Origin: Takakia lepidozioides
Taxonomy: Eukaryota > Plantae > Bryophyta
Length of the DNA stretch: 64,000 nucleotides
Assembly: GCA_030704615.1 (NCBI GenBank)
Contig: CM060731.1
Span: 38,440,001-38,504,000 of the forward strand
Reading direction: 5' to 3'
Positions 3,764 to 46,800 of this stretch are shown here, in pieces; position 1 is the stretch's first letter; every line of letters starts with the position of its first letter. A program made the translations under genes and the position numbers. A model generated the notes under the pieces. That model did no database searches. It worked only from the letters and a program-made list of their open reading frames with translations, and had not been told where the DNA came from.

Positions 3764-4500
3764 TTTCATAGAGGCGTTATTCTCTTACAAGAAACAATGG
3801 TCACTGTGACAATGAAGCAAGCCCCTGTTCCCAAGGTATGCCGTTTCAAACAGCGCTCCGTATATGGAGTTCGATGGGAGTGAAAAAACTCCAGGACAGA
3901 TCGCTTGTGAAAATAGGTGGCAACAAGAAGTTGACACTGCATGATGAGCTGCGGGACATGGGTCGAGCAATCGTAACAATTTCACATGTTGGTAAGCGAT
4001 TGCGGGAGGTGGACAGGGCGGAAACGGCCCTTCGACATAAACAGGTAATAGATCACACACCTGTGATGCGTTGCTCTTGCCCATGGATGCTTTAGAGCGA
4101 TCAGTTATCTAGATCTGTGTTCGATAAAATGAATGGAAATCAGTTTGGCACTGGCGGTGCATCAATGAAGGAATCTTGCATATCAATCAAGCATGCGACC
4201 TACTTAGATTAAATCACATCATTTCACACCTTCCTGCCAATTTTGTGCAGGTGGATAGCACTGTGGAAGGCCTCTCTTGAAAATGAAGCTCTCGACAGGA
4301 CATCGATACAAATGGTGGAAGTCTACAACGAGCGAGTTCAGAGAAATGCCCCGCCTTCGTTCTCCCAACTTGGACTGTTGCATTCCACAAGGCTACCGCC
4401 AACAGTGTATTGTCAGTACGTTCTCTCTCATTCCTGGGTACTGAGAACATACCACACCCAACCATGTAGCAGGATTTCACCCAGGATCATCTGGGTGGCA
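3764..4500 (+). pseudogene. NLR fragment: end of NB-ARC (winged helix, MHD-like LHD motif), intron, start of LRR-proximal exon
   Basis: MPFQTALRIWS..LQDRSLVKI..LTLHDELRDMGRAIV. Intron ~4045-4250 lies at the same position as in the HNL at 41961-42162, and the next exon VDSTVEGLS matches VYSTVEGLS. Stops follow. Confidence 0.85.
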
Positions 4501-23438: not shown

Positions 23439-24770
23439 CTACTCCGCGGGGGACCTCCAGATTTGCAGCCCCTCAATTTCCGTGATGCGATGGGGCAGCT
23501 CCCTAAGCCACCCACAAATATGCAGGTATTCCAAGTGTTTGAGGAGGCAGATCAACTCAGGCAGCTTGCGTAGCTGACGACACCGATCTAAGTTGAGGAA
23601 TTGCAGTCTCTCCAATTCCCCAATATTCTCGGGCAACTCCAGAAGCCCCTCACAACCCTGTAGACTGAGCTCTTGTAATTGTGTGAGGCGGCAGATTGAC
23701 TCGGGTAGCTCCATAAGCCCCTCACAATCCTCTAGGTGGAGCTCTTGTAATTGTTTGAGGTGGCAAATCGACTAAGGCAGCTTGCGCAGCTGACGACACC
23801 ATCCCAATTTAAGAACTCACAATCTCTCCAATTCCCCAATGTTCTCAGGCAGCTCCATAAGCCCCTCACACTTCTCTAGAATGAGCTCTAGTAATTGTGT
23901 GAGGCGGCAAATCGACTCGGGCAGCTTACGTAGTCGACCACACCCGCCCAACTTGAGCAATCGCAGTCTCTCAAGTTCCCCGATACGCTCGGGCAGCTCC
24001 ATAAGCCCTTCATAATCGTATAACAACATTGTTTGAGGTTGCAGATGGACTTGGGCAGCTTGAGTAAACTACCACACCCACACAAGTTGAGCTCTTGCAA
24101 TCTCTCCAATTCCCCAATACGCTCGGGTATCTCCGTGAGCCCATAACAACCACTTAGGGCAAGATTTGTTTGAGGCGGCAGATCGACTCAGGCAGCTTAC
24201 ATAGCTGACCACACCATTGCAAGTCGAGCACCGGCAGCCCAACAAGTTCCCCAATATTATTGGGCAGCTCCGTAAGCCCCAAACAACCAAATAACCACAA
24301 GTCTTGTAATTGTTTGAGGTTGCAGAAGGACTCGGGCAGCTTGGGTAGCAGTCTCTCTAGTTCCCCAATACGCTCGGGCAGCTCTGTGAGCCTACAAGCA
24401 TATAGGCCAAGCTCTTGTAATTGTTTGAGGCGGCAGATCGACTCGGGCAGCTTGCATAGCTGATCACAACTGTCCAACTGGGGCACCCGTAGCCCCGCAA
24501 GTTCCCCGATATTCTCGGGCAACTTCGTAAGCCCCCCACAACACTGCAGGTCCAGCTCTTGTAACAGTTTGAGACGGTAGATGGATTGCGGTAGTTTCTC
24601 CAGAGCATAACACCCCCGTAAATGTAGCTCCAGTAAAGATGCAAAATCCCCAATGCAGTCTGGTAGTCTGCACAACTTCTCATTATTACTCAAGTCAAGC
24701 ACACATAACATCGTGAGATATCCAAAGGATGTCAGGAAATCTGTTAATCGCGTAGTTCGAAGAAAAGAGG
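23439..24770 (-). pseudogene. LRR region of an NLR (HNL paralog), N-terminal domains missing
   Basis: Regular 24-aa LRRs (LQELDLQCCGGLTKLPENIGELAG / LRKLPESICRLTQ) with frameshifts and stops. 24770-24665 is homologous to 42337-42443 of the HNL. Confidence 0.9.
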
Positions 24771-26295: not shown

Positions 26296-27650
26296 GGAGT
26301 GCGATGATTGCAGGATATGCTCAGCATGGGTCTGGTAAGGAAGCTTTTGAGATCTATGAGAAATGCTACAGGCAGGGGTGACCCCTGATTTGGTCACCTT
26401 CATTTGCATTCTCAATGCATGTGCCCTGGAAAAGGGCAAAAGGGTTCATGCTGACATTATCAAAACTGGAACTGGGTCATATATTAATTTGGAGAATACC
26501 TTAGTGAACATGTATGCTAAATGCGGGAGCCTGAAGGATGCATGCCAAGTGTTTGGCAACATGGCTGAACGAGATTTGGTCTCATGGAACACAATGATTG
26601 CAGGATATACTGAGCATGGTTTCAGTAAGGAGGCTTTCGAGATGTATGAGAAAATGCGAGGGGAAGGGCTGATGCCCGACAAGGTCACATTCATCTGTGT
26701 GCTCAATGCTTGTGCCAGCCTGGCAGCCCTGGGAAAGGGAAAAGAGGTGTATGCTGAGATTACAGAAGCTGGAATTGCATCAGATATCATTCTCGAGACT
26801 GCGCTTGTGAACATGTATGCCAAGTGCAAACGAGATTTGGTCTCATGGAATGCGATGATTGCAAGATATGCCCAGTATGGGGTAGGGAGGCTGTGCAACT
26901 ATTTGAATACATGAGTCTGGAGGACTTGAAGAAAAATGGTATCACCTTTATATGTGTTTTGTCTGCATGTAGCCATGTGGACCTAGTGGATGAAGGTTTT
27001 AACTACTTTGTTTCCATCAGTCAAAACCATAGTCTCACTCCTACCCTGGAGCACTTTGGCTGCATGGTGGACCTTCTTGGCCGTGCAGGGCGATTGGATG
27101 AGGCAGAGGACTTCATTAGTAAGATGCCAATTGAACCAGATGCTACGGTGTGGGGGGCCTGGCTTGGTGCATGTAGAATTCATGGCAATGTGGAGCAAGC
27201 AGAGCGTGCAGCGACATGCATTCTCAAGTGCGATCCACAACACTTTGCAACTTATGTGCTCCTATCAAACATCCATGCTGCAGATGGCAGGTGGGCTGAC
27301 ACAGCAAAGGTCAGAAAAATGATGCACAAGAGAGGTGTAGGAAAGGAGCCAGGGCACAGCTGTATTGAGGTGGACAACCGGGTGCATACCTTTGTTGCAG
27401 AAGACAAACTGCATCCACAAGTGGGGGAAATCCATGCTGAGCTGAATAGAGGCTCTGAGCAGATAGAGAAAACCGGGTACATGCCGGACCGGACTCTCGT
27501 TTTGTATTGCACGATGTGGAAGAGCAGCAGAAGGAATTTTCTCTCTGCCACCACAGTGAGAAGCTGGCCATTGCTTTTTGGCTGATAAGCACACCCTTTG
27601 GGACGCCTATCGGCATCATCAAGAACCTTTGGATGTGTGGTGACTGCATG
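26293..27650 (+). pseudogene. PLS-E-DYW PPR pseudogene
   Basis: PLS repeats, E motif WGAWLGACRIHGNVE, KEPGHSCIE, HSEKLAIAF, CGDC, then truncation by foreign sequence. Frameshifts at ~26885 and ~27490. Confidence 0.92.
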
Positions 27651-30230: not shown

Positions 30231-33200
30231 TGGCTTTTGTCATGTGTGTTCCCCACTGTTTATTGGCCCATCACATGGGCCCGAAGTTATTATAAAATCT
30301 ACCTTCCTTGAGGACCTCCGACATTGAAGTGTGGTTCTTAAATTGCATCTTGTAATTCAGCTTCGAATCTCAATAAACAAGTTAGGAAGCAGAATCCAAT
30401 GTCCAAGAGAACCTAAATCTACAAAGCAATCAACCAACCTTGATAAAGATCGGTCAGCTCATTGTTGATGATCGCGACAAAGATGATGGCAACCACTTGG
30501 ACCGTCACCAGAACAAGACACCACCAAATTTTCAGCTTCTCATTTGATCTAGAAGAATTTATGAATGTGCAGGGGTTGAATACTACCTCTAAGAAAAAAG
30601 TAGGAGGGTTAGACTTCTGTTTCTTTCTCTCTCCAAAGCAAGGGCCTTCATACTCTGATCGGAGGAAACATCAAATCAACTTCAAATCTGATTGTTGTGG
30701 AAAAACTGTTGCCTCACACTATACTTGAATTTTGGCACAATGACTAGAGTAGGTTTCGTAGAGGCGTTATTCTCTTACAAGAAACAATGGTCACTGTGAC
30801 AATGAAGCAAGCCCCTGTTCCCCAGGTATGCCGTTTGAAACAGCGCTCCGTATATGGAGTTCGATGGGATTGAAAAGCCTCCAGGATAGATCGCTTGTGA
30901 AAATAGGTGGCAACAAGAAGTTGACACTGCATGATCAGCTGCGGGACATGGGTCGAGCAATCGTAACAATTTCACATGTTGGTAAGCGATTGTGGGAGGT
31001 GGACAATGCGGAAATGGCCCTTCGACATGAACAGGTAATAGATCACACACCTGCGATGAGTTGCTATTGGCCATGGATGCTTTTAGAGCGATCACATCTG
31101 GGTTCGATAAAATGAATGGATCTCAGTTTGGCACTGGCGGTGCATCAATGAAGGAATCTTGCATATCAATCAACCTACTCATATTAAAGCACATCATTTC
31201 ACACCTTACTGCCAATTTTGTGCAGGTGGATAGCACTGTGGAAGGCCTCTCTTGAAAATGAAGCTCTCGACAGGACATCGATGCAAATGGTGGAAGTCTA
31301 CAACGAGCGAGTTCACAAAAATGCCCCGCCTTCGTTCTCCCAACTTGGACTGTTGCATTCCACAAGGCTACCGCCAACAATGTATTGTGGAATGCCTCTC
31401 TTGAAAATGAAGCTCTCGACAGGACATCGATGCAAATGGTGGAAGTCTACAACGAGCGAGTTCACAAAAATGCCCCGCCTTCGTTCTCCCAACTTGGACA
31501 GTTGCATTCCTCAAGGCTACCGCCAACAATGTATTGTCAGTACATTCTCTCTCATTCCTGGGTACTGGGAACATACCACACCCAACCATGTAGCAGGATT
31601 TGACCCCAGAATCATGTGGGTGGCACTCTGTGCACTATCCAACTGAGCTACAGACTGGTGGTTCCTTCTTATGGGCTCCTACCTCACTAAAGGGAAATGA
31701 AGGCCTTCTTTACTTTCATTTTCCACCAAAACAGAAGGATGATCAACGAGATTGCCGCCAGGAAATCTGTCTATCTGTACAGGGGGTGGCATTCATCTTT
31801 CAAACTCTGTGATTCACGCATTTTATGCTTGGCCCGTACTAGCTGTCGTGGTGAACCCTCCTCCGCATCTGCACTCTCACATAGTTGTGGTCTTGTTGCT
31901 GCATCTTATGGAGAGGCTCTACAGCACACAATTGTTTGATCATGCCGTCCACCAATGATTCCACCCATACGGTATCTGTTTTGGCTACGCACTGAAGACT
32001 TGAGTTTATCCAAAAGAGCTTTGAATCATTTTACCGATGTGATGGCCAGTTATTGCTGGAGCAGCTGGAGCCATTTTACCGATGCTCCAGTTGTGCATTG
32101 ACTTCTAGAGGCCAACGAGCGTACATACTTCCCCAGAGTGTAGATGTTGCTAAATTTACATAGTAGGAGACATTGCGCTTGTATGCTGATTGGGGCTTTG
32201 AGTAGTGAGACGACTGCGAGGTTAGCAGAGTGTATGGGCAAAGCTTATGCACTTGACAGGGTTGCAAGTAACTAACTAATAAGCTCATGAAGTCTCAAAG
32301 ATTGTGGCGTTTGCGAATTGAAGTGAAGTACAGCAAAGTAGGGGGTCCCCACAAAGCAGGAGGTTCAGGTGCCCACTAGTGGTTTTTGTACAAAGGTCCA
32401 CGATCACCATGTTCTTCAGACGTAAGCGCACAAAGGAAGGCATTTGGATTGAGCCTTTTATCGGGAATTCCTAGGGTGAAAGCAGAGGTAGCTGTGATGA
32501 TACAGATGGAGTGCAGGCTGCTGATGGCTCCAATGTCCACGTACAGCATGGAGCTCCAGACCAACACTACAGTGGGTATGGTTTTGATGCTGAGTCAAGG
32601 GTTTCAACTCAAACAGATAGCTTTGGTACAGTTCGCACTTAAAGTAGATGACTGCAGTAGTTATGTAACCCTGTTTATATGTAGCAAGGAGCCTGTTCTC
32701 ACAACAAGAGCTTTCTTTGAAGCATCTAGGAGCTTTTAAGGAACATGATAGCTTAAACCAATGGTAAGTAAGTGCTTTCAGTCATGCAGGACGGCAGGTT
32801 TGAATTTGACACAGTTCTTTGTTGGACATCAAACTGGCAGCAGGGGTAGCACCAGTCGCCGCCATTTTTGAAAGAGGGTCAAGAGAGGGGCTAAACAAGA
32901 TCTCTCCTGTCACTTGTGGGGATCGGAGGACCCTCTCTAAGGCAGGAGCATTGAAAGAGGCACTTCACATTTTGAACCAACAAGGCCTTCGGGCAGACTC
33001 CAATGCTTATGTTACTGTCTTGCAGGAGTGCATCAACTTGAAAGACCTAGCAGAGGGAAAGCAGGTGCATGCGCACATCATCCAAAGTGGATTAAAACCG
33101 ACTTATTGTTCAACACCCTTGTGAACATGTATGCCAAATGTGGGAGTCTGGTGGAGGCACGCCAAGTGTTTGACAAAATGCCTGAACGAACGGTATTCAC

Positions 33201-33570
33201 GTGGACTATCATGATAGCAGGATATGCCAAGCATAGGTGTGCTGAGGAGGCTTTTAAAATCTATGAGCAAATGCAGTGACACCCGACAGGGTCACCTTCA
33301 TTTGCATTCTCAACGCCTGTGCCACCCTAGGAGCCCTGGAAAAGGGCAAAGAGGTTCACGCTGCCATTATCACAGCGGGAATCCCTTCATATATTAATTT
33401 GGAGACTGCCCTTACATGGACGCCAAATGTTCTAAATGCATGTGCCAGGTTAGGAGCCCTAGAAAAGGGCAAAGAGATCCATGGTGATATGGTGAAAGCT
33501 GGAATTCCATCATATATTAACTTGGAGAACACCCTTGTTGACATGTATGCCAAATGTGGGAGCATGAATG
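30231..33570 (+). repeat. Segmental duplication, copy 2 of 3237-6045
   Basis: Starts inside the last exon of the hydrolase. Has an extra ~750 bp (32290-33045) and an internal ~149-bp tandem duplication (31237-31536). Confidence 0.95.
30754..31640 (+). pseudogene. NLR fragment (NB-ARC end with LHD motif and following exon), duplicate of 3764-4500
   Basis: MPFETALRIWSSMGLKSLQDRSLVKIGGNKKLTLHDQLRDMGRAIV, same intron. Confidence 0.85.
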
Positions 33571-35761
33571 ATGCGTGCAAGGTGTTCAACAATATGCTTA
33601 AACGAAATGTGGTCTCATGGAGCTTGATGATTGCAGGATATGCTCAGCAAGGTTGTGGTGAGGAGGCTTTCAAGATGTATGAGCAAATGAGACAGGAAGG
33701 GGTATTGCCTGACAGGGTCACATTCACTTGTGTTCTTAATGCATGTGCCAGCCTAGGAGCTCTGGTAGAGGGCAAACAGGTGCACGCTGACATCATCAAA
33801 GCTGGAATACCGTCGCATGTGAACTTGGATACTGCCCAGAGCTACTGTTCCATCGGACGCGGAACGTCATCTGCATACTCCATAGCTATATGGTCTAATA
33901 CCCCTGGTACAATTGTCCCCAGATGTGGACCCTCAGTTTCCTGAAGACCATTCTCTGGGGTTGTAATTCTGTCCCCACTGCTCTCCTCCTCACCACTGTC
34001 ATTCGAGGATTCTTCCTCCGTTGTTGGCTCCTCGCTTCCAGAACCCTCCTCCGCCTCCCCATCCATAGGGCTGTACCCGACCACGTTGCAAATCCGCCCT
34101 TTTTTGCGCTGGCCATTCTGCCATTTGAGACACTCCTGTCCATTGCTCCTGTGCCTGAGCATTGGCTACTACCGCCGCATAGGGAGGAATGACGGATGCA
34201 CGTCATGTGTTCGACAATATGGCAATACGTGATGTTGTCTCATGGAGCGTGATGATTGCAGGGTACACCGAGCATGGTTGTGGTCAGGAGGCAATCGAAC
34301 TTTACAACCATATGATACAGGAAAGGGTGACCCCCAACACTTTCACATTCAGTTGCGTACTCAATGCATGTGCCAGTCTAGGAGTCCTGGAGAAGGGCAA
34401 AGAGGTCCATGCTGACATTGTCAAGGCTGGAATGGGGTCTGATATCATCATGGAGACTGCCCTTGCTGACATGTATGCTAAATGCGGGAGCTTAAATGAT
34501 GCCCGCCAGGTTTTTGACAACATGCCTAAACGAGATGTAGTTTCATGGAGTGTGATGGTCTCAGGATATGCTCAGCATGGTTGTGGTAGGAAGGCCTTGG
34601 AGATGTATGAAGGAATGATAAGGGAAGGGGTGACGCCTGACAAGGTAACATTCATTTGCGTTCTCAATGCCTGTTCTAGCCTGGCAGCCCTGGAAAAGGG
34701 CAAAGAGGTCCATGCTGACATCAGCAAAGCTGGAATCTCTGCAGACATCATTGTGGAGACTGCCCTTGCTGACATGTATGCGAAATGTGGGAGCATTAAT
34801 GATGCCCGTCAAGTGTTTGACAGTATGGCCAAACGAAATGTTGTGTCATGGAACATGATGATGGCAGGGTATGCCCAGCGTGGACATGGCAGGGAGGCCC
34901 TGCGACTATTTGAACAAATGCAACAGGAAGGCGTGAATCCAGACAGTATCACCTTTCTGTCTTCTCTCTGCATGTAGCCATCTGGGCTTAGTGGACGAAG
35001 GTCATCACTACTTTGTTTCCATGACTCCAGATTACGGCTTCATGGCTACAGTGGAGCATTTTGGCTGCATGGTGGACCTTCTTAGCCGTGGAGGGAAACT
35101 GGAGGAGGCAGAGGATTTCATCAAGGAAATGCCCATCGAAGCAGATGCTGGAGTCTGGGGGGCTTTGCTTGGCGCCTGCCGAATTTATGGAGATGTGGAG
35201 CTAGCAGAGCGAGCTGCAAAAAACCTTCTCAACTGCAATCCTGATCATGCTGCAACATATGTGCTTCTATCAAATATCTACGCTGCTGCTGGCAGGTGGG
35301 ACGAGAAAGCAAAGGTGAGAAAAATGATAGAGGAAAGAGGTGTCAGAAAGGAGGCAGGGCACAGCTGTATTGAGATTAACAATCAGTTTCATATATTTGT
35401 TGTAGAAGATAAAATGCATCCCCAAATTGAGGAAATCCATGCTGAACTGAAGAGATTGTTTGGGCAGATGAGGGAGGCTGGGTATGTGCCTGACACGTGC
35501 TTTGTATTACACGATGTGGAGGAGGACAAAAAGGAGTTTTCTCTTTGCTACCACAGTGAGAAGCTGGCTATTGCTTTTGGGATCATCAGCACACCTCAGG
35601 GGACACCCGTCCGTATCATCAAGAACCTGAGGGTGTGTGGTGACTGCCACACAGCCACCAAGTTCATCTCGAAGATTGTTGGGCGAGCACTTGTTGTACG
35701 GGATAGCGACCGTTTCCATCACTTCCAAGACGGGGTCTATTCTTGTGGGGATTATTGGTGA
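32820..35761 (+). pseudogene. Near full-length PLS-E1-E2-DYW PPR RNA-editing factor, disrupted
   Basis: N-terminal LKEALHIL..AYVTVLQEC, many P-L-S triplets, E motifs, KEAGHSCIE, HSEKLAIAFG, CGDCH, ends YSCGDYW*. Frameshifts ~33100, ~33276, ~34960, deletion ~33415, ~345-bp insertion 33839-34185. Confidence 0.93.
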
Positions 35762-38741: not shown

Positions 38742-39104
38742 CCATCTCATCTCTTCCCAGTAACTCAGATCGATTTCTTCTCAGGGTTCAAAGGTGCTTG
38801 AAGGCATTTGGCGGTAAGTTCACATGTAAAAAATGTGACCATGTATGTCAACTTTAATCTGTATATATGGAACATGGCAAGCTGGAGTAGGTGGGGTTTC
38901 ACAAAGTAATAGCTGCATCCAGCATTCTGTAAATCAGAAGTGCTATCAATCATCTTTCGGCCAACTTTAAAAAGAAAACATCATTCAAACAAGCAGCTCA
39001 CAATCGAGTGATTCACGGAAGTTTTGCTCGGCGCACTAACTATTATGGTGAACCCTCCTCTGCTTCTGCAGTCTCACATAGTTATGGTCTTGTTGTTGCA
39101 GCTT

Positions 39105-42100
39105 ATGGAGAGGCTTAGAGACAAACCTGGATGTGGTGCTCTTTCATGGCCTGCAGTTCGGCAACTTAGGAGTGGAAGCTTGGATGAGACTGTGGATGAG
39201 ACTTTTCTATCCAGATCTTCGGGAAGCCACTTTGCAGGCCAGCAAACAGTCTCATCACCATGTTGGACCAAGCTTCCACGTGGTGATGAGACTGTTTGCT
39301 GGCCTGCGAAGTGGCTTCCCGAAGATCTGGATACAAAAGTGCAAGTGCTTTCTCTCTCATGATGCAGAGCACACATGAGCCCAGAGGGAGGAAACAACGA
39401 AGACGTCTGCGACATTGGCCAAAAACCTTCTAGAGAGTTTTGTGAATAGGTAGTCCGCCACTTTCTCTCCATAGCCAGCTCCCCTCATTGAAGCTATGGG
39501 GTGTACATGTAGAAGTCATCAGCCATCGTTGATCACCAGCTTTGAGTGCATTTCTTCGAGGGCAAGGAGTGCTGTTATTCAAGTTGCAGTTCAAGTGAAT
39601 TTTACTGTGGATTTTACTGACTCACATGGCCGTGGCCCCGGCTTGTAATCAGAGTACAGATATCAGGCTTGTGTGGTGAAAACCAAAGATAACTTATATT
39701 TGTGAGGCTCGAAATAAAGCTTAAGGTTGATCTGGAGCATCTCTAGTTAAGTAACATGCGCAGAGACTTTCTTGTCTTTTGCAATCAGCACCAGGGACGG
39801 AAATCTATGGGATCCTCTGTCATCAGTAGGACTGCATGATATATAGTCATGTGGCATACCTTAAAGTGTCCCATGTTATGCAGTGGTGTCCAGCACAAGC
39901 TCGGGCCTCTGCAATTTTGCAGCGGGAGATGGAATGATGGCAAACAAAACCCGATGGTTCTGGTTGGCCATAACTTTGGGGGCCTTGTCATCAAGAGTTT
40001 GATTGTGGAGGCTCACAGAAGAAGCTCTCACCCCCCAAAAAATGGGTATTGTACTTCATGCAGTCCCACATGCGGGAAGTACAAATATGGAGACTTACAT
40101 CAGGAAATGCTGCAAACTTTTTGGGACCTATAGCTAAGTGGGATAATGAGAAATATCAATCCCTTCCAGCGAAAAATGGAGGAGCTCTCAATAGAAATAC
40201 AGAGTTGTGGGCAGCTCCCTCAATGTCTATGCTTTACAGAGGGCAAGCCCGCCGGTAAATTTACCAAATTTGTCTGGTAATGGGGGAAGGAAGGAGAGTC
40301 CTAGAATGATTGATGAGGTAGCCAAATTGAATGACTTGACACCGATTTGCATAGAGTAGGTATATATATATACACACACATCAGATCGTACACTTGGAGA
40401 GATCAAGGAGCATGGAAGGTACTGCATTGAGGATAGAGAGCTTAGTGCCGTTCTATTGCTTTTTCCAGAATGCCGCAATTGCCTGCTGTTGTGTTGGCCA
40501 CTGAAAAACTAGAAGAATCAGGTGCTAATTCCAGGTATAATGGGCTTGGATTGTGCAGGAGGTTATGGTGGAGCGTGCCTCCACAACAAAACACTACCAA
40601 ATTGAAGATGCAGACCATCCAAGTTTGTAGGCCAACCAGCCAGACGCATGTGAGCCAGCAAAAGCTTCTTGAACTCCTTCAGCTAATCCAAAACCAGGAA
40701 GTGAGTGATCCCCCCCTACTTCTTTGTTGAACCACGTACTTTACTCCAGGAATGGCAGAGTGTGGTGCCATATTTGGCCCCATGTCCAAAGATGTTGGGC
40801 CAAAAACATTTACCATTAGCAAAGACCTTATTTCTCTTGCTCGCACATCCCTATCTTCTTGCAAATAAACTTCTTGAGTCAGAGCTGGATTCCTGAACTC
40901 CCGATACATTTGGTTGGACTCTCAGAACATGTCGACAATGTGAAGGGCCGACTCGAAGGGGTTCCTAGAATGGGTGTAGTTGGGATGGGCGGTATTGGCA
41001 TTACAACGTTGGCAAAGGAGGTCTACCATGATCTCACCTGCATGGATTTGGATGCGTACAGCTTCCTGCCAGACATCAGATCAAGTGGCATTCTGATACA
41101 GAGACAGCTATTACGGGACATAGGTAACAGTATGGATCAGAGTAGCAGTCAAAATGCGGAGCAAGTTCAGATGCTCAAAGAGAAGGGTTTGAAGGATGAA
41201 AAAGTGCTCTTGGTGTTGGACTATGCTAGCACTAAGGGCCAAATGGTTGCTTTGGGTCTAAGTAAGCAGTTGAAAACTGGTAGTGAAGTAATTGTGACAA
41301 GCCAGAATTGGGGGATACTACATGGATATGTTGATTGGAAGTATGACATGGAGGGACTCGGCAAAGAGCAAGCCCTGGATCTATTTTGCCGCCACGCTTT
41401 TATAGCTGGAGACAAGCGAAAACAGGAATTTGAAGCAGTGACAGAGAGGATTGTGGCTGGTTGTGGTGGGCTTCCTTTGAGCCTACAGGTTATGGGTGCT
41501 TCTCTTTGCTATTGTAATGATTTGGACGAATGGAAAGATGCACTAGACAGGCTTGGAAAGGCACAGCCTTTGGAAGATGATGAGGATGAATATGTGTGGA
41601 GCCGGTTGAAAATTAGTTACAATTCCTTAGGGGAGGTGGAGCAAAATATGTTTCTTGACATTGCTTGCTTTTTTCATAAGGGTCTCTTTTTGGACTATGG
41701 TAGTGACCCGAATGACCAGTTTTCCCAAGGTATGCCTTCTGAAACAGGGCTGCGGATATGGAGTCCCTGGTCAGCAAAGCTTGGATTGAAAAACCTTTGG
41801 GACAGATCGCCTGTGAAAATAGACGGCCGCAAAGGAGTTGCTCACATTGCATGATCAGTTGCAGGACGTGGGTCGAGCCATTGCAAGAAATAATTCTCTA
41901 CCATTTGGTGACCGGTTATGGAAGGTGGAGACAACAGAAAATGCCATTCGAGATAAAAAGGTGATGGATCTCACAACTTTAATGTGGTGCGCTTGGCCTT
42001 CAGCCAGATTTGTTAAAATTGATGTTAATCAGTTTGGTGCAAGCAGGACATGACTGAGTGGATCTAGCATGTCAATGACTGGATCTCACATCTGAATCAA

Positions 42101-42443
42101 TCATATGTGACCTACTTCTGATAAAGCACCTCATTTCACACCTTACTTCCTTTTTTGCGCAGGTGTATAGCACTGTGGAAGGCCTCTCATTGGCAGGCTC
42201 AACAATGAAGCTTTCGGCGATGGAGGGAACACTGAGCAAGTTAACAAAATTACCCGCCTACGTTTGCTCAACTTGGATGGTTGCAGCCCGGAAAATGTGG
42301 AGTACTGTCTCGGGGAACATGCCAGTCAACTAAGAATTCTTTTTCTTCGCAATACGCAATTAACAGATCTGCCAACATCCTTTGCATATCTTGGGATGTT
42401 ACGTGTGCTTGACTTGAGTTACAATTACGACTTGTGCAGACTA
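39105..42443 (+). pseudogene. Alpha/beta-hydrolase-NB-ARC-LRR (HNL) immune receptor, disrupted and truncated in the early LRRs
   Basis: Hydrolase motifs LDVVLFHGLQ, VCWPAKWLPEDL..VLSLS, PMVLVGHNFGGLVIKSL, GIVLHAVPHAGS, DADH..VCRP. NB-ARC ORF 40859-41854 has GMGGIGITTLA, VLLVLDYA, GSEVIVTS, GGLPLSL, MFLDIACFF, LHDQL. Intron 41961-42162, then LRRs LRILFLRNTQLTDLP..LRVLDLSYN. Multiple frameshifts. Confidence 0.9.
39201..39340. repeat. Near-perfect inverted repeat (~65-bp arms, ~7-nt loop) inside the HNL hydrolase exon
   Basis: 39201-39267 is the reverse complement of 39275-39340. The ORF track shows the same peptide on both strands (39024+ and 39074-). Confidence 0.95.
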
Positions 42444-42899
42444 GATTTGCGCAGCTTGGGTAGCTGCTCACAATACCTGTTTTCAGGACAGTGTACTTTC
42501 TCTCCTTCCTTGTTTCTCAAGGTCTTCGCCTCTAGCTCATAGCTCACAGATCCGCTCGGCTCTCTCTTGGAGTCATAAGAACGCTCCTCTCCCAGGCTTC
42601 GTCTATTTTCATTGTCTTGTGGTTGCTAGTATGCAGGAGGGACATTCTGTTTTTATATCGAAATTTCACCATGTAATGAAGAATTTAAATCATTTAATCT
42701 ATTTTTATTTTTATATAATATTTTTAAATTAAACAATACTACCATTTAATAAAATTTTCCAAGCTGCTATTCCCTTTTTTCTTTTTTCTTTTTAAAAAAA
42801 TAAAAAAATCAAAGATTATTCTTGATGACTCGTGGCATAAACCCTACTTGAACTAGAACACGTGACATTATATGATACAACATTCTTTTATCCATATTT

Positions 42900-43269: not shown

Positions 43270-43700
43270 GGCAATATATATGGCCAAATGAGGGCTGGCC
43301 TGTCTGTTTCTTTCTCTCTTCACAGGTCCATTAGACAGGGATGCCCTCTAGCTCCATTTCTCTTCCTATTTGTAGCTAACACCCTAGGATACCTGCTTGA
43401 CTCTGAGGCCTCGGTGCATGGTCTAAGAATAAGGAACCCCATGACACAGTTGTGTATCCAAGTAAAAGACTCTATGTTTGTTGACGATACCTTCTTGCTA
43501 TCGGATGCCAACCCCAACACCCTTCAGGCTGCCCAAGATACATTGGCCCAGTTCTGTGATGTCTCTGGCTTCAGGGTCAATTGGAGTAAAACCAAGGCCA
43601 TCCTGGTGGGTGACCTCACTCAATCAGAAATTGGCGATACCCCCTCATGGGGCGAAGAATTTGGTCTGGTTTGGCTGGCATCTGGTGAACCAACAACACT
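43270..43700 (+). mobile_element. L1-clade reverse transcriptase fragment
   Basis: RSIRQGCPLAPFLF..MFVDDT..SGFRVNWSKT. Confidence 0.88.
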
Positions 43701-43829
43701 CCCAATCAATGGAAGCTCATCCTAAGGGGTGGTAAGGAAATCCATAAGGAACACCAATGGGTTCACTATGCCATGCATCACCAAACAAATACAAAACACG
43801 GCATTTGGAAAACGGTCCCTCTTTACAAA

Positions 43830-46800
43830 CAAGATTTGTATAACACAAGTCTTTGCAAAACGGATTCTTAAATTAGCTAAGCCAGACTAGGTATGCAGTC
43901 CCTTTCTCACCATCTAAGATTGATGTCCCATCAACGCTTCTTCCGCTTTTGAGGTCGTCCTTCAAAGGCTGGGACCGCCTCGGGTGCGTTTCCTATTTTC
44001 AAGGCACACATCTAAGTTGCCTGCACTTGATGGTGTAAGTTTTGTTAAACTAGTCATGCATTAACAAGAGGATCCAAAGGACCTGAATACAGATAGCACT
44101 TTGCTTTGGCTATTTAACTACTTGGGTGATAGGCCTTAGTCTATCACTGATAATGACTGAGTACCTACATAAACGGAAGAGCAAATGAGTGACTTACGCG
44201 ACCGCAAGGGAAAGCAAATGGGACTGCATAAATTACGCTCCTAACTTATCTGAGGACTGACATGGTTGCGTCCTCCTCTAAACTAACACCCTCTCTCAGT
44301 CCTCAAAAACGCAGACTCTATTATCTATGTAATATCGCGTGCCAAGAATATTCCAGGGTGTGACTCCATTAGTCCTGAAGTTCCCTCAGACTACATACTC
44401 CCAAATCTTCTCTAAACTTCTCAAATTTCAATCTGCGCAAAAGTTTTGTGAAAACGTCAGCCACTTGATCTTGAGTATCAACATGAATGAGATCAATTTC
44501 TCCGCTTAAGAAAACGGTCTTGACGTCAAGATGGTATATGGGCCACAAATTGAGAGCAGCTCGACTGTTCCTCGTATTGTACCTCACTTCACGATAGGCG
44601 CAAAACTCTCGTCAAAGTCCACACCTTCATTTTGTTCAAACCCTCGAGCAACCAAACGAGCTTTTAGTTTCTGAGGAATCTACATACCAATTTGTGTCCT
44701 TATCTGTATCCATTGAGGCTATTGCAACCTCCAATATGTGGGCAGTGTTTGACTCGTCTCCATCTTCAGAATCATGACCATCTTGATCATTTTTCATCAT
44801 ATTGGCTTGTTAGATCGAGCGGTTTCTCATGATCTTCTCGTAGGGAACTGCACAGTGTTTGGCCCAATGACCTACTTTTCCACATCTATTGCAGTTGTAA
44901 GGCAAAATCTTCTTCTGCGACCTACCGCCTCCAAAGTTGCGATCTCATTTCCTCTGGTGGAATTTCTTGAATTTCACCCATAAGGCCTCATCATCGTTAT
45001 TTGACTCATTGTTGATGTTCTTGAGCTCTCGCCGGTTCTCCTCATGCAGCAATATACCTATCAATTCTTCAAGAGAAGACATCTCCCTGTGAGTCATAAT
45101 AGATTGTGTGTAATGCTCATACGAATCAGGCAAGGCATTCAAGACCATCTCTACAATGATATCATCATCAATGACCTCACCAAAATCAGCTAGCTGGTTT
45201 GTTAAATCAGTGACTGTCTCAATGAAAGTTTCCGTTGGAGTGTCATCATCTTTCTTGAGCATCGTGAGTTTCTTACGAAGCATGAGCCTCCTCGAGTTAG
45301 CCTTGACCTCATTGATGCTAGTCAAATAATCCCAGACAACTTTTGGATCAGTCATGTGTTTGATGGATAGAATAATCTTATTCGAAACGGAAAGATTTAT
45401 GATGCTAAGTGCTCTACGTTTCTGTCTCTCGAATAGTGCCCTGTTCTTGTCGGTGACCTCAAAATCTTTCTCGACAGTATGAGCAATTTCATCTCTTAGC
45501 AACAGATTGTGGACTTTGAATTTCACACAACAAAGTTAAATTGTCAACTAACTTGTTAGTCTCTGAGACCTCCCCCATTGTTCTCTGACCCTTGTCCAGA
45601 CGACATGATGAAGAACTACTACTAGATTAGTATAATATTCTAGATAGAAATGACAAAACTACTATTGGAAATCTTAGTAAAATATTCTAGAATGACAGAT
45701 TACAGCTTTGGAGCATTGCTCACAAAGTATAAATAAAACACGTAAAAGACAGAAACAGCTAGTGGAGCAAAGTTGCATACCGGAAATCTTCCTTGCGATT
45801 CCCAGACTCTCAGAGAATTCCAAAGTCCCCCTCATGTTCTGATACCATGTAAGTTTTGTTAAACTAGACTAAGTTATGCATTAACAAGAGGATCCAAAGG
45901 ACCTAAACACAAATAACACTTTGCTTTGGCCATTTAACTACTGCGGTGATGGGCCTAAGTTTATCACTGATAGTGTCTGAGTACCTACATAAACGGAAGA
46001 GCAAGTAAGTGACTTACGGCACCGCAAGGGAAGCAGATGGGACTGCATAAATTACGCTCCTTACTTATCTGAGGACTGACATGGTTGCGTCATCCTCTAA
46101 ACTATCACCTAATAACCATTATATTTCACGAGAGACTCTGTTTCTCGGTTCTTGAACCTTCTCAGCTTAAGTACTGCCTCTACCTCGTGGACTCACGTCC
46201 AGAGGTAGTCGAAATTTTTTAATGTTCAACCAAACTTCCATGCTTGCTGAACAAACTTGATCTTCCTTCAACTTTGATTTGCTTACAACTCATAGCGCTT
46301 TCTTGCTTTGGCAATGTTGAATTTTGCAAGCTCTACCAAACGCTTACGTTCCTCCAACACTGACATTGTTGTTGGAACCTTTTCTTCATCCCCTTAGGTC
46401 TCATCCTAATTATTTGCTTGGGTGGCCCAAGTTGTAGGTAGCAAATGTACTTTCTTATAGGTCACTTGGATACATCGGCAGAGTTCTGTTATGATAATGT
46501 AGAACACTACGCAAATAGGCTAGGCTTCTCCCTTTCAAGTGGGCTATGGGAAAGCACCTTTGGTGCCAGCACGACAAGGGTCGTCCAAGCAAATAAGGAT
46601 GAGGCCGGAAGGGATGAAGAAAAGGTTCAAGCGGCAATTGGCTTGCAAAATCCAACATCGCAAAAGCAAGAAAGTGCTATGAGTTGGAAGCAAATCGGAT
46701 CGGAATGAGGTCAAGTGTGAAGCACACATGGAGGTCCGGTTGAACATTAAGATTTTTCAACTTTTTCGACTACCGGTGTGTCCAAAGTTCATGCTTTGGT

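Follow-up and report, generated by a model that had tools for sequence, protein, structure and literature searches.

The inverted-duplication model of Allen et al. (2004) describes how plant MIRNA genes originate, and it is accepted for the microRNAs (miRNAs) that target nucleotide-binding leucine-rich-repeat (NLR) immune receptors (PMC5026261). The link between NLRs and small RNAs has been traced back only to gymnosperms (PMC5026261). Hairpins can also be written by a single mutation. In primates, template switches during replication have given rise to whole hairpins and new miRNA genes in one event (PMC10710096), and snap-back synthesis-dependent microhomology-mediated end joining (SD-MMEJ) makes use of inverted primer repeats of 2-9 nt and of repeated annealing rounds (PMC5728401). 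Here we describe an inverted repeat in a 64,000-nucleotide stretch of the moss Takakia lepidozioides (contig CM060731.1, positions 38,440,001 to 38,504,000), called the window below, with positions counted from its first letter. The repeat sits in exon 1 of a plus-strand gene of the hydrolase-NB-ARC-LRR type (Hyd-NLR, or HNL), a class of receptors described for bryophytes (PMC11218826). The hairpin is likely a mutational scar, left by one event in a dead receptor gene and at present a neutral by-product.

In a repeat scan of the whole window, the fold-back at 39201-39340 is the top short-range inverted repeat. Its arms, 39201-39263 and 39278-39340, have 63 nt each, lie 14 nt apart, and are complementary at 60 of the 63 positions (95%) by repeat search. 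An ungapped, base-by-base pairing of the arms leaves three positions that are not Watson-Crick, namely C.C at 39207/39334 and T.G at 39233/39308 and 39261/39280. Both T.G positions are G:U wobbles in RNA of the plus strand and A.C mismatches in RNA of the minus strand.

A fold of the region had been proposed by the first-pass annotation, a note made from the letters of the window. Folding 39180-39350 as RNA gives -124.9 kcal/mol, compared with a mean of -49.2 for shuffled sequences (z = -19.06), and none of the 200 shuffles equals it. In the minimum-energy structure, three more pairs (GGA/TCC) form within the spacer, which shortens the loop to 7 nt and leaves T39264 as a 1-nt bulge. Of the 63 stem pairs, 62 are kept when a 521-nt context is folded. 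The fold of the minus strand is somewhat weaker, at -118.6 kcal/mol. That annotation had placed an inverted-copy insertion at 39193-39263 and given its stem two G:U pairs, one mismatch, one bulge and a loop of about 7 nt. The insertion lies exactly there, and the pairing and the minimum-energy structure agree with each of these details.

The insertion interrupts a coding sequence. Excising 39193-39263 (71 nt) fuses ...VEAWMRL to WTKLPRGDETVCWPAKWLPEDL... in a single frame, so the earlier statement that its removal restores the reading was correct. Because TGGA flanks both sides, the start of the insertion can be placed anywhere from 39193 to 39197. Both arms are homologous to Hyd-NLR coding sequence over their whole length, the right one as native exon 1 and the left one as QHGDETVCWPAKWLPEDLDRKV on the minus strand. 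As had been proposed, a sense transcript would carry the 5' arm as antisense to the segment coding for CWPAKWLPEDL. The further step in that proposal, that the dead receptor has become a regulator of its family, goes too far.

The junctions suggest how the insertion may have been made. A DNA end growing in exon 1, whether in replication or in the repair of a double-strand break, would have switched template three times, each time at a short microhomology. In the first, the 3' end of the leftward-synthesised strand would fold back, GTGGA would pair with TCCAC, and the strand would be copied on itself from 39280 to 39337 (about 58 nt), so that the segment coding for ..GDETVCWPAKWLPEDLDTK.. would be written again in inverted orientation. 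The growing end would then return to the original template at ACT/AGT and, eight bases later, slip by 12 nt from a first TGGA to a second. The outcome of the three switches would be a frame-breaking insertion of 71 nt together with a near-perfect inverted repeat of 63 bp.

This model accounts for almost every base. Native TGGA is present twice, 12 nt apart, with the second copy inside GTGGA at the insertion site, and TCCAC (39275-39279) sits 11 nt downstream of GTGGA as its reverse complement. The microhomologies at the switch points measure 5 nt (GTGGA/TCCAC), 3 nt (ACT/AGT) and 4 nt (TGGA/TGGA). When scripted, the three-switch model rebuilds the observed 186 nt at 39165-39350; it misses three substitutions and a single additional T, the latter being the 1-nt bulge of the hairpin. 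The insert therefore has the form of a templated insertion: it is reverse-complementary to sequence close by, and every switch point shows microhomology. An origin as a transposon or miniature inverted-repeat transposable element (MITE) was rejected, as all inserted bases but one are templated within 150 nt.

Two of the three differences between the arms are transitions, at sites that read CG in the native arm but TG in the inserted one, and the third is a G/C transversion. The two transitions probably post-date the event, because CG to TG is the usual decay of methylated CpG; an error of the polymerase at the event is the alternative. The observed/expected ratio of CpG is uninformative (0.31-0.62 for the locus compared with 0.46 for the window).

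A fold-back chimera of long reads, carried into the consensus, could in principle leave such a repeat, since palindromic artefacts do occur in long-read libraries. The insertion is, however, internal, with the gene continuing on both sides, and does not look like a palindrome at the end of a read. The arms differ at three positions and by one indel, and the microhomologies at the junctions are ordered. Furthermore, 84-92% of the 31-mers sampled from 38950-42600 (3.65 kb) occur in each of four DNA runs made from a single sample. Identical stretches between the arms are at most 27 nt long, so that 31-mers are able to distinguish them, but these runs may themselves be the source data of the assembly. 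Taken with these observations, an artefact of sequencing or assembly is very improbable.

The proposed steps resemble those of snap-back SD-MMEJ and of polymerase-theta templated insertions: a short inverted repeat close to the break (here GTGGA/TCCAC) would prime synthesis along the same strand, the end would re-anneal at a microhomology of 3 nt, and annealing and synthesis would then be repeated. In contrast, the insertions reported for that pathway mostly range from a few to a few tens of nucleotides, which puts the ~58 nt seen here at the long end. The template-switch hairpins of Monttinen, Frilander and Loytynoja (2023; PMC10710096) are alike in that a nearby complementary strand is copied in one event, giving full hairpin pairing inside an existing transcription unit. 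They are found in primates and have stems of ~35 bp, whereas the stem described here belongs to a plant, spans 63 bp and would involve a third switch (the 12-nt slip). The event may have been a template-switch mutation or a repair of the snap-back SD-MMEJ or polymerase-theta type.

The gene that received the insertion is dead. It follows the Hyd-NLR domain order, with hydrolase pieces at 39133-39450 and 39915-40130, NB-ARC at 40859-41854 and LRR at 42237-42542. The hydrolase family was confirmed by alignment with nine Hyd-NLR N-termini, taken from an exhaustive protein search. Pfam finds NB-ARC in the 331-codon open reading frame (ORF) at 40859-41854 (E = 6.2e-28) and LRR motifs at 42264-42542. 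An intact gene from a moss metagenome (locus L005) is composed of hydrolase exon 1, hydrolase exon 2, a short exon, an NB-ARC exon and an LRR exon, and tblastn of these exons against the window shows the same exon order in the pseudogene.

A three-frame reading of exon 1 by homology gives five frame changes and two in-frame stops. The exon starts in frame 0 with the ATG at 39105 (MERLRDKP) and goes on in frame 1 with the hydrolase segment LDVVLFHGLQFGNLGVEAWMRLW, up to the 71-nt insertion. After the insertion, frame 0 reads WTKLPRGDETVCWPAKWLPEDLDTKVQVLSLS and ends at a TGA at 39360; frame 1 follows with HDAEHT and ends at a TGA at 39376. Frame 0 then gives EGGNNEDVCDIGQ, and the last part, NLLESFVNR, is in frame 1 ahead of a GT donor near 39450. 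The ATG at 39105, which stands behind the acceptor ttgttgcag followed by ctt, is out of frame by one with the LDVVLFHGLQ of the hydrolase. The acceptor and ATG context that the first-pass annotation had called intact is so as a DNA motif, but not as a coding start.

Key residues have changed as well. The nucleophile elbow of the hydrolase (39957-39974) reads GHNFGG, with Asn where relatives carry Ser or Cys, and in the P-loop, GMGGIGITTL, Ile replaces the invariant Lys. An intact frame and the key residues of a Hyd-NLR (the nucleophile Ser/Cys and the P-loop Lys) are thus absent. The frame changes, the stops, the deletion in exon 2, GHNFGG, GIGITT and the LRR stub all bear out the earlier label of pseudogene, with many lesions besides the insertion. 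A separate feature of the NB-ARC ORF (40859-41854) is the presence of ~17 additional residues after DIACFF. The features of the locus are listed in Table 1.

Table 1. Features of the hairpin, its host pseudogene and the adjacent retroelement remnants, in window positions.
Feature	Position	Strand	Description and basis
Pseudogene exon 1	39105..39451	+	Three-frame read and tblastn against L005; GT donor near 39450
Tandem direct duplication, 12-nt period (TGGATGAGACT, G, TGGATGAGACT)	39181..39203	+	Left junction; would reflect the slip between the two native TGGA
71-nt insertion	39193..39263	+	11 nt repeating 39181-39191, then inverted copy of 39280-39337, then one extra T
Hairpin 5' arm (inverted copy)	39201..39263	+	Antisense to hydrolase coding sequence on plus-strand RNA; tblastn minus-frame match QHGDETVCWPAKWLPEDLDRKV
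Inter-arm spacer	39264..39277	+	Internal GGA/TCC pairs; 7-nt loop; 1-nt bulge T39264
TCCAC, putative snap-back primer repeat	39275..39279	+	Reverse complement of native GTGGA at the insertion site; sequence and model check
Hairpin 3' arm	39278..39340	+	Native coding sequence for (R)GDETVCWPAKWLPEDLDTK(V)
Hydrolase exon 2 remnant	39915..40130	+	GHNFGG nucleophile elbow; ~18-codon frame-shifting deletion before ..VPHAGS..
NB-ARC exon	40859..41854	+	Open 331-codon ORF; P-loop GMGGIGITTL
Short LRR remnant	42237..42542	+	Pfam and tblastn against L005
Retroelement ORF downstream of LRR remnant (RVT_1)	43288..43725	+	Pfam
Retroelement ORF downstream of LRR remnant (copia gag)	44945..45526	-	Pfam

Several observations weigh against a neutral scar. 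The NB-ARC exon of ~1 kb is still open though exons 1 and 2 are riddled with lesions, at least six of them frame-breaking in roughly 600 nt of hydrolase exons. The open frame is unexplained, and part of the locus could still be in use. The locus may also be transcribed, as two runs from other studies, which we guess to be RNA, contain 33% and 14% of the words sampled across 38950-42600; no run is on record as RNA. The best left-arm 21-mers pair with HNL genes of foreign mosses at one mismatch and one G:U, within a biased set of sites, and the targeting of close paralogs appears chemically plausible from such pairing. Finally, the locus is presumed rather than observed to be neutral, and the putative ancestral state, free of the insertion, is read from the restored reading frame only.

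These points bear on an active locus, in which the pseudogene is transcribed, the stem is diced by Dicer-like (DCL) enzymes of the DCL4, DCL2 or DCL3 type, and small interfering RNAs (siRNAs) from the 5' arm silence intact HNL paralogs that carry the KWLPEDL-coding segment. If the locus is transcribed from its own promoter, its RNA would fold and Dicer-like cutting would give heterogeneous hairpin siRNAs, with those of the 5' arm antisense to HNL mRNAs. The hairpin of the sense strand is stable, and its only two transitions are compatible with G:U pairing on that strand; CpG decay accounts equally well for them. Part of the locus is represented in the two runs that may be RNA. On the other hand, the host gene is heavily decayed, so the promoter may be dead as well. 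All runs matched to the locus are kept as contigs, and contigs cannot hold small RNAs.

Regarding targets, the 64-kb window contains no paralog of the HNL hydrolase exon. A scan of metagenomes with the degenerate pattern CWPxxWLPEDL returned at least 120 moss loci, all of them foreign HNL genes that match the arm at no more than 41 of its 63 nt. When every 21-mer of the 5' arm was paired with 118 such sites, half of the sites (59/118) had a penalty of 4 or less, in a test biased by the search pattern, since 15 of the 21 positions of a target had been set or limited by it beforehand. The KWLPEDL-coding segment appears conserved at the nucleotide level across these foreign sites, which were selected by that pattern. 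Both arms derive from this conserved coding motif, the 5' arm being antisense to it. Among Hyd-NLRs that were not picked by the motif it varies (IWPQDWL, LW-LDWI), and therefore only close paralogs could be targeted. The first-pass annotation had called CWPxxWLP the most conserved motif of the hydrolase, which is an overstatement: FHG, ILSxSY and GHSxGG are equally conserved in the Hyd-NLR alignment, and this form of the motif is found in one subclade only.

Both the origin of miRNAs by inverted duplication and the targeting of motifs conserved among NLRs are established (PMC5026261), as the first-pass annotation had said of the former, and they speak for such activity here. The locus is like the model in having an inverted piece of a coding gene, a near-perfect stem, arms homologous to an NLR family over their whole length, and a conserved-motif segment. 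It is unlike the model in its bryophyte host and in having an insertion of 71 nt within an exon rather than a pair of inverted gene copies. It is a possible proto-small-RNA locus, with the anatomy expected of the first inverted-duplication stage, and would not be a working miRNA. Considering both sides, we regard silencing by siRNAs from an active locus as unlikely.

The plant miRNA criteria of Axtell and Meyers (2018) reportedly ask for a single foldback with a miRNA/miRNA* duplex of few mismatches and no large internal loops. They are also said to demand small-RNA reads from independent libraries in which a single duplex of 20-24 nt is precisely excised. The 63-bp stem, with one mismatch, two G:U pairs and a 1-nt bulge, has the structure asked for, though trivially so, as any long inverted repeat would. 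An Rfam scan of the hairpin returned only sub-threshold matches (50 against a gathering score of 88 bits, and lower), on both strands and to unrelated miRNA models of animals and plants. These matches therefore reflect the hairpin shape only.

The first-pass annotation had proposed a newborn miRNA, comparable to miR482/2118. In this explanation, DCL1 would precisely process a canonical young miRNA, with a defined miRNA/miRNA* duplex, against HNL genes, in the way that miR482/2118 acts on the P-loop. The locus shares with the miR482/2118 superfamily only the idea that a single small RNA could act on many NLRs through one conserved coding motif. It is not a member: the sequences are unrelated, the gathering score was not reached for any Rfam family, and the arms come from the hydrolase domain instead of the P-loop. 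Long, near-perfect stems yield heterogeneous siRNAs of the DCL4 type until mismatches build up (PMC5026261), and a 63-bp stem of this kind corresponds to the proto-MIRNA or hairpin-siRNA stage, not to a miRNA. Despite the foldback geometry and the weak Rfam matches, a canonical miRNA is extremely improbable.

As for the wider meaning, a mutational scar would still show cleanly, and in a plant, how a single template-switch event can turn conserved coding sequence of a gene into a full RNA hairpin of 63 bp. Such a scar is the starting material that the inverted-duplication model of MIRNA birth assumes, with switch points readable here at single-base resolution. It also raises a question for surveys, namely how often such scars arise and what fraction of them becomes small-RNA genes. 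If the hairpin were expressed and diced, small-RNA control of NLRs would extend to bryophytes and to a new target domain, whereas the known link reaches gymnosperms only (PMC5026261). Our literature searches found no bryophyte case of NLR control by small RNAs. That this is the first bryophyte small-RNA locus both born from an NLR gene and targeting NLR genes, through hairpin siRNAs against the KWLPEDL-coding segment of paralogs, is decidedly doubtful. If true, small-RNA control of immune receptors would have arisen independently of, and outside, the miR482/2118 system of seed plants, and it would be caught here at the stage of one mutation.

The NB-ARC exon was also compared with protein collections, by word search and by exhaustive search of representatives. 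The best identities are 38-44%, to Sphagnum and to mosses from metagenomes. Exact look-ups of six ORFs in protein collections gave no match, and neither did a BLAST of the locus against a plasmid collection, which is irrelevant to a plant locus. In moss-associated metagenomes (L001-L120; Ga0116226-31, Ga0209208, Ga0209611, Ga0127505-09), well over 100 contigs carry a near-identical Hyd-NLR exon 1 (..NREECICWPEKWLPEDLNNN..). Such numbers point to a Hyd-NLR family that is large and homogeneous in the host moss of those metagenomes; the repeated assembly of the same loci across samples is the alternative.

Further NLR debris is present in the window. An LRR array of ~430 codons with in-frame stops is found at 23463-24768 (-), and fragments of the NB-ARC C-terminus and winged-helix domain (GMPFETALRIWS...LHDQLRDMGRAI) are found at 3829-3972 (+) and 30819-31040 (+) and share 59-62% identity with the pseudogene. 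The window has the look of an NLR cluster in decay.

A second fold-back, of 421 bp, lies near retroelement remnants at 46276-46696. Its arms are 91% (46276-46331 / 46641-46696) and 81% (46365-46411 / 46592-46638) matched, and either a MITE-like element or a further long hairpin may be present here. Lastly, pentatricopeptide repeat (PPR) genes of the PLS/E/DYW RNA-editing type are found at 33276-35761 and 26363-27585 (+), with a DYW deaminase at E = 8e-43. Genes of this type rule out a Marchantia-type liverwort as the source of the DNA. Each is split over two or three adjacent ORFs, and these may be frame-shifted copies.

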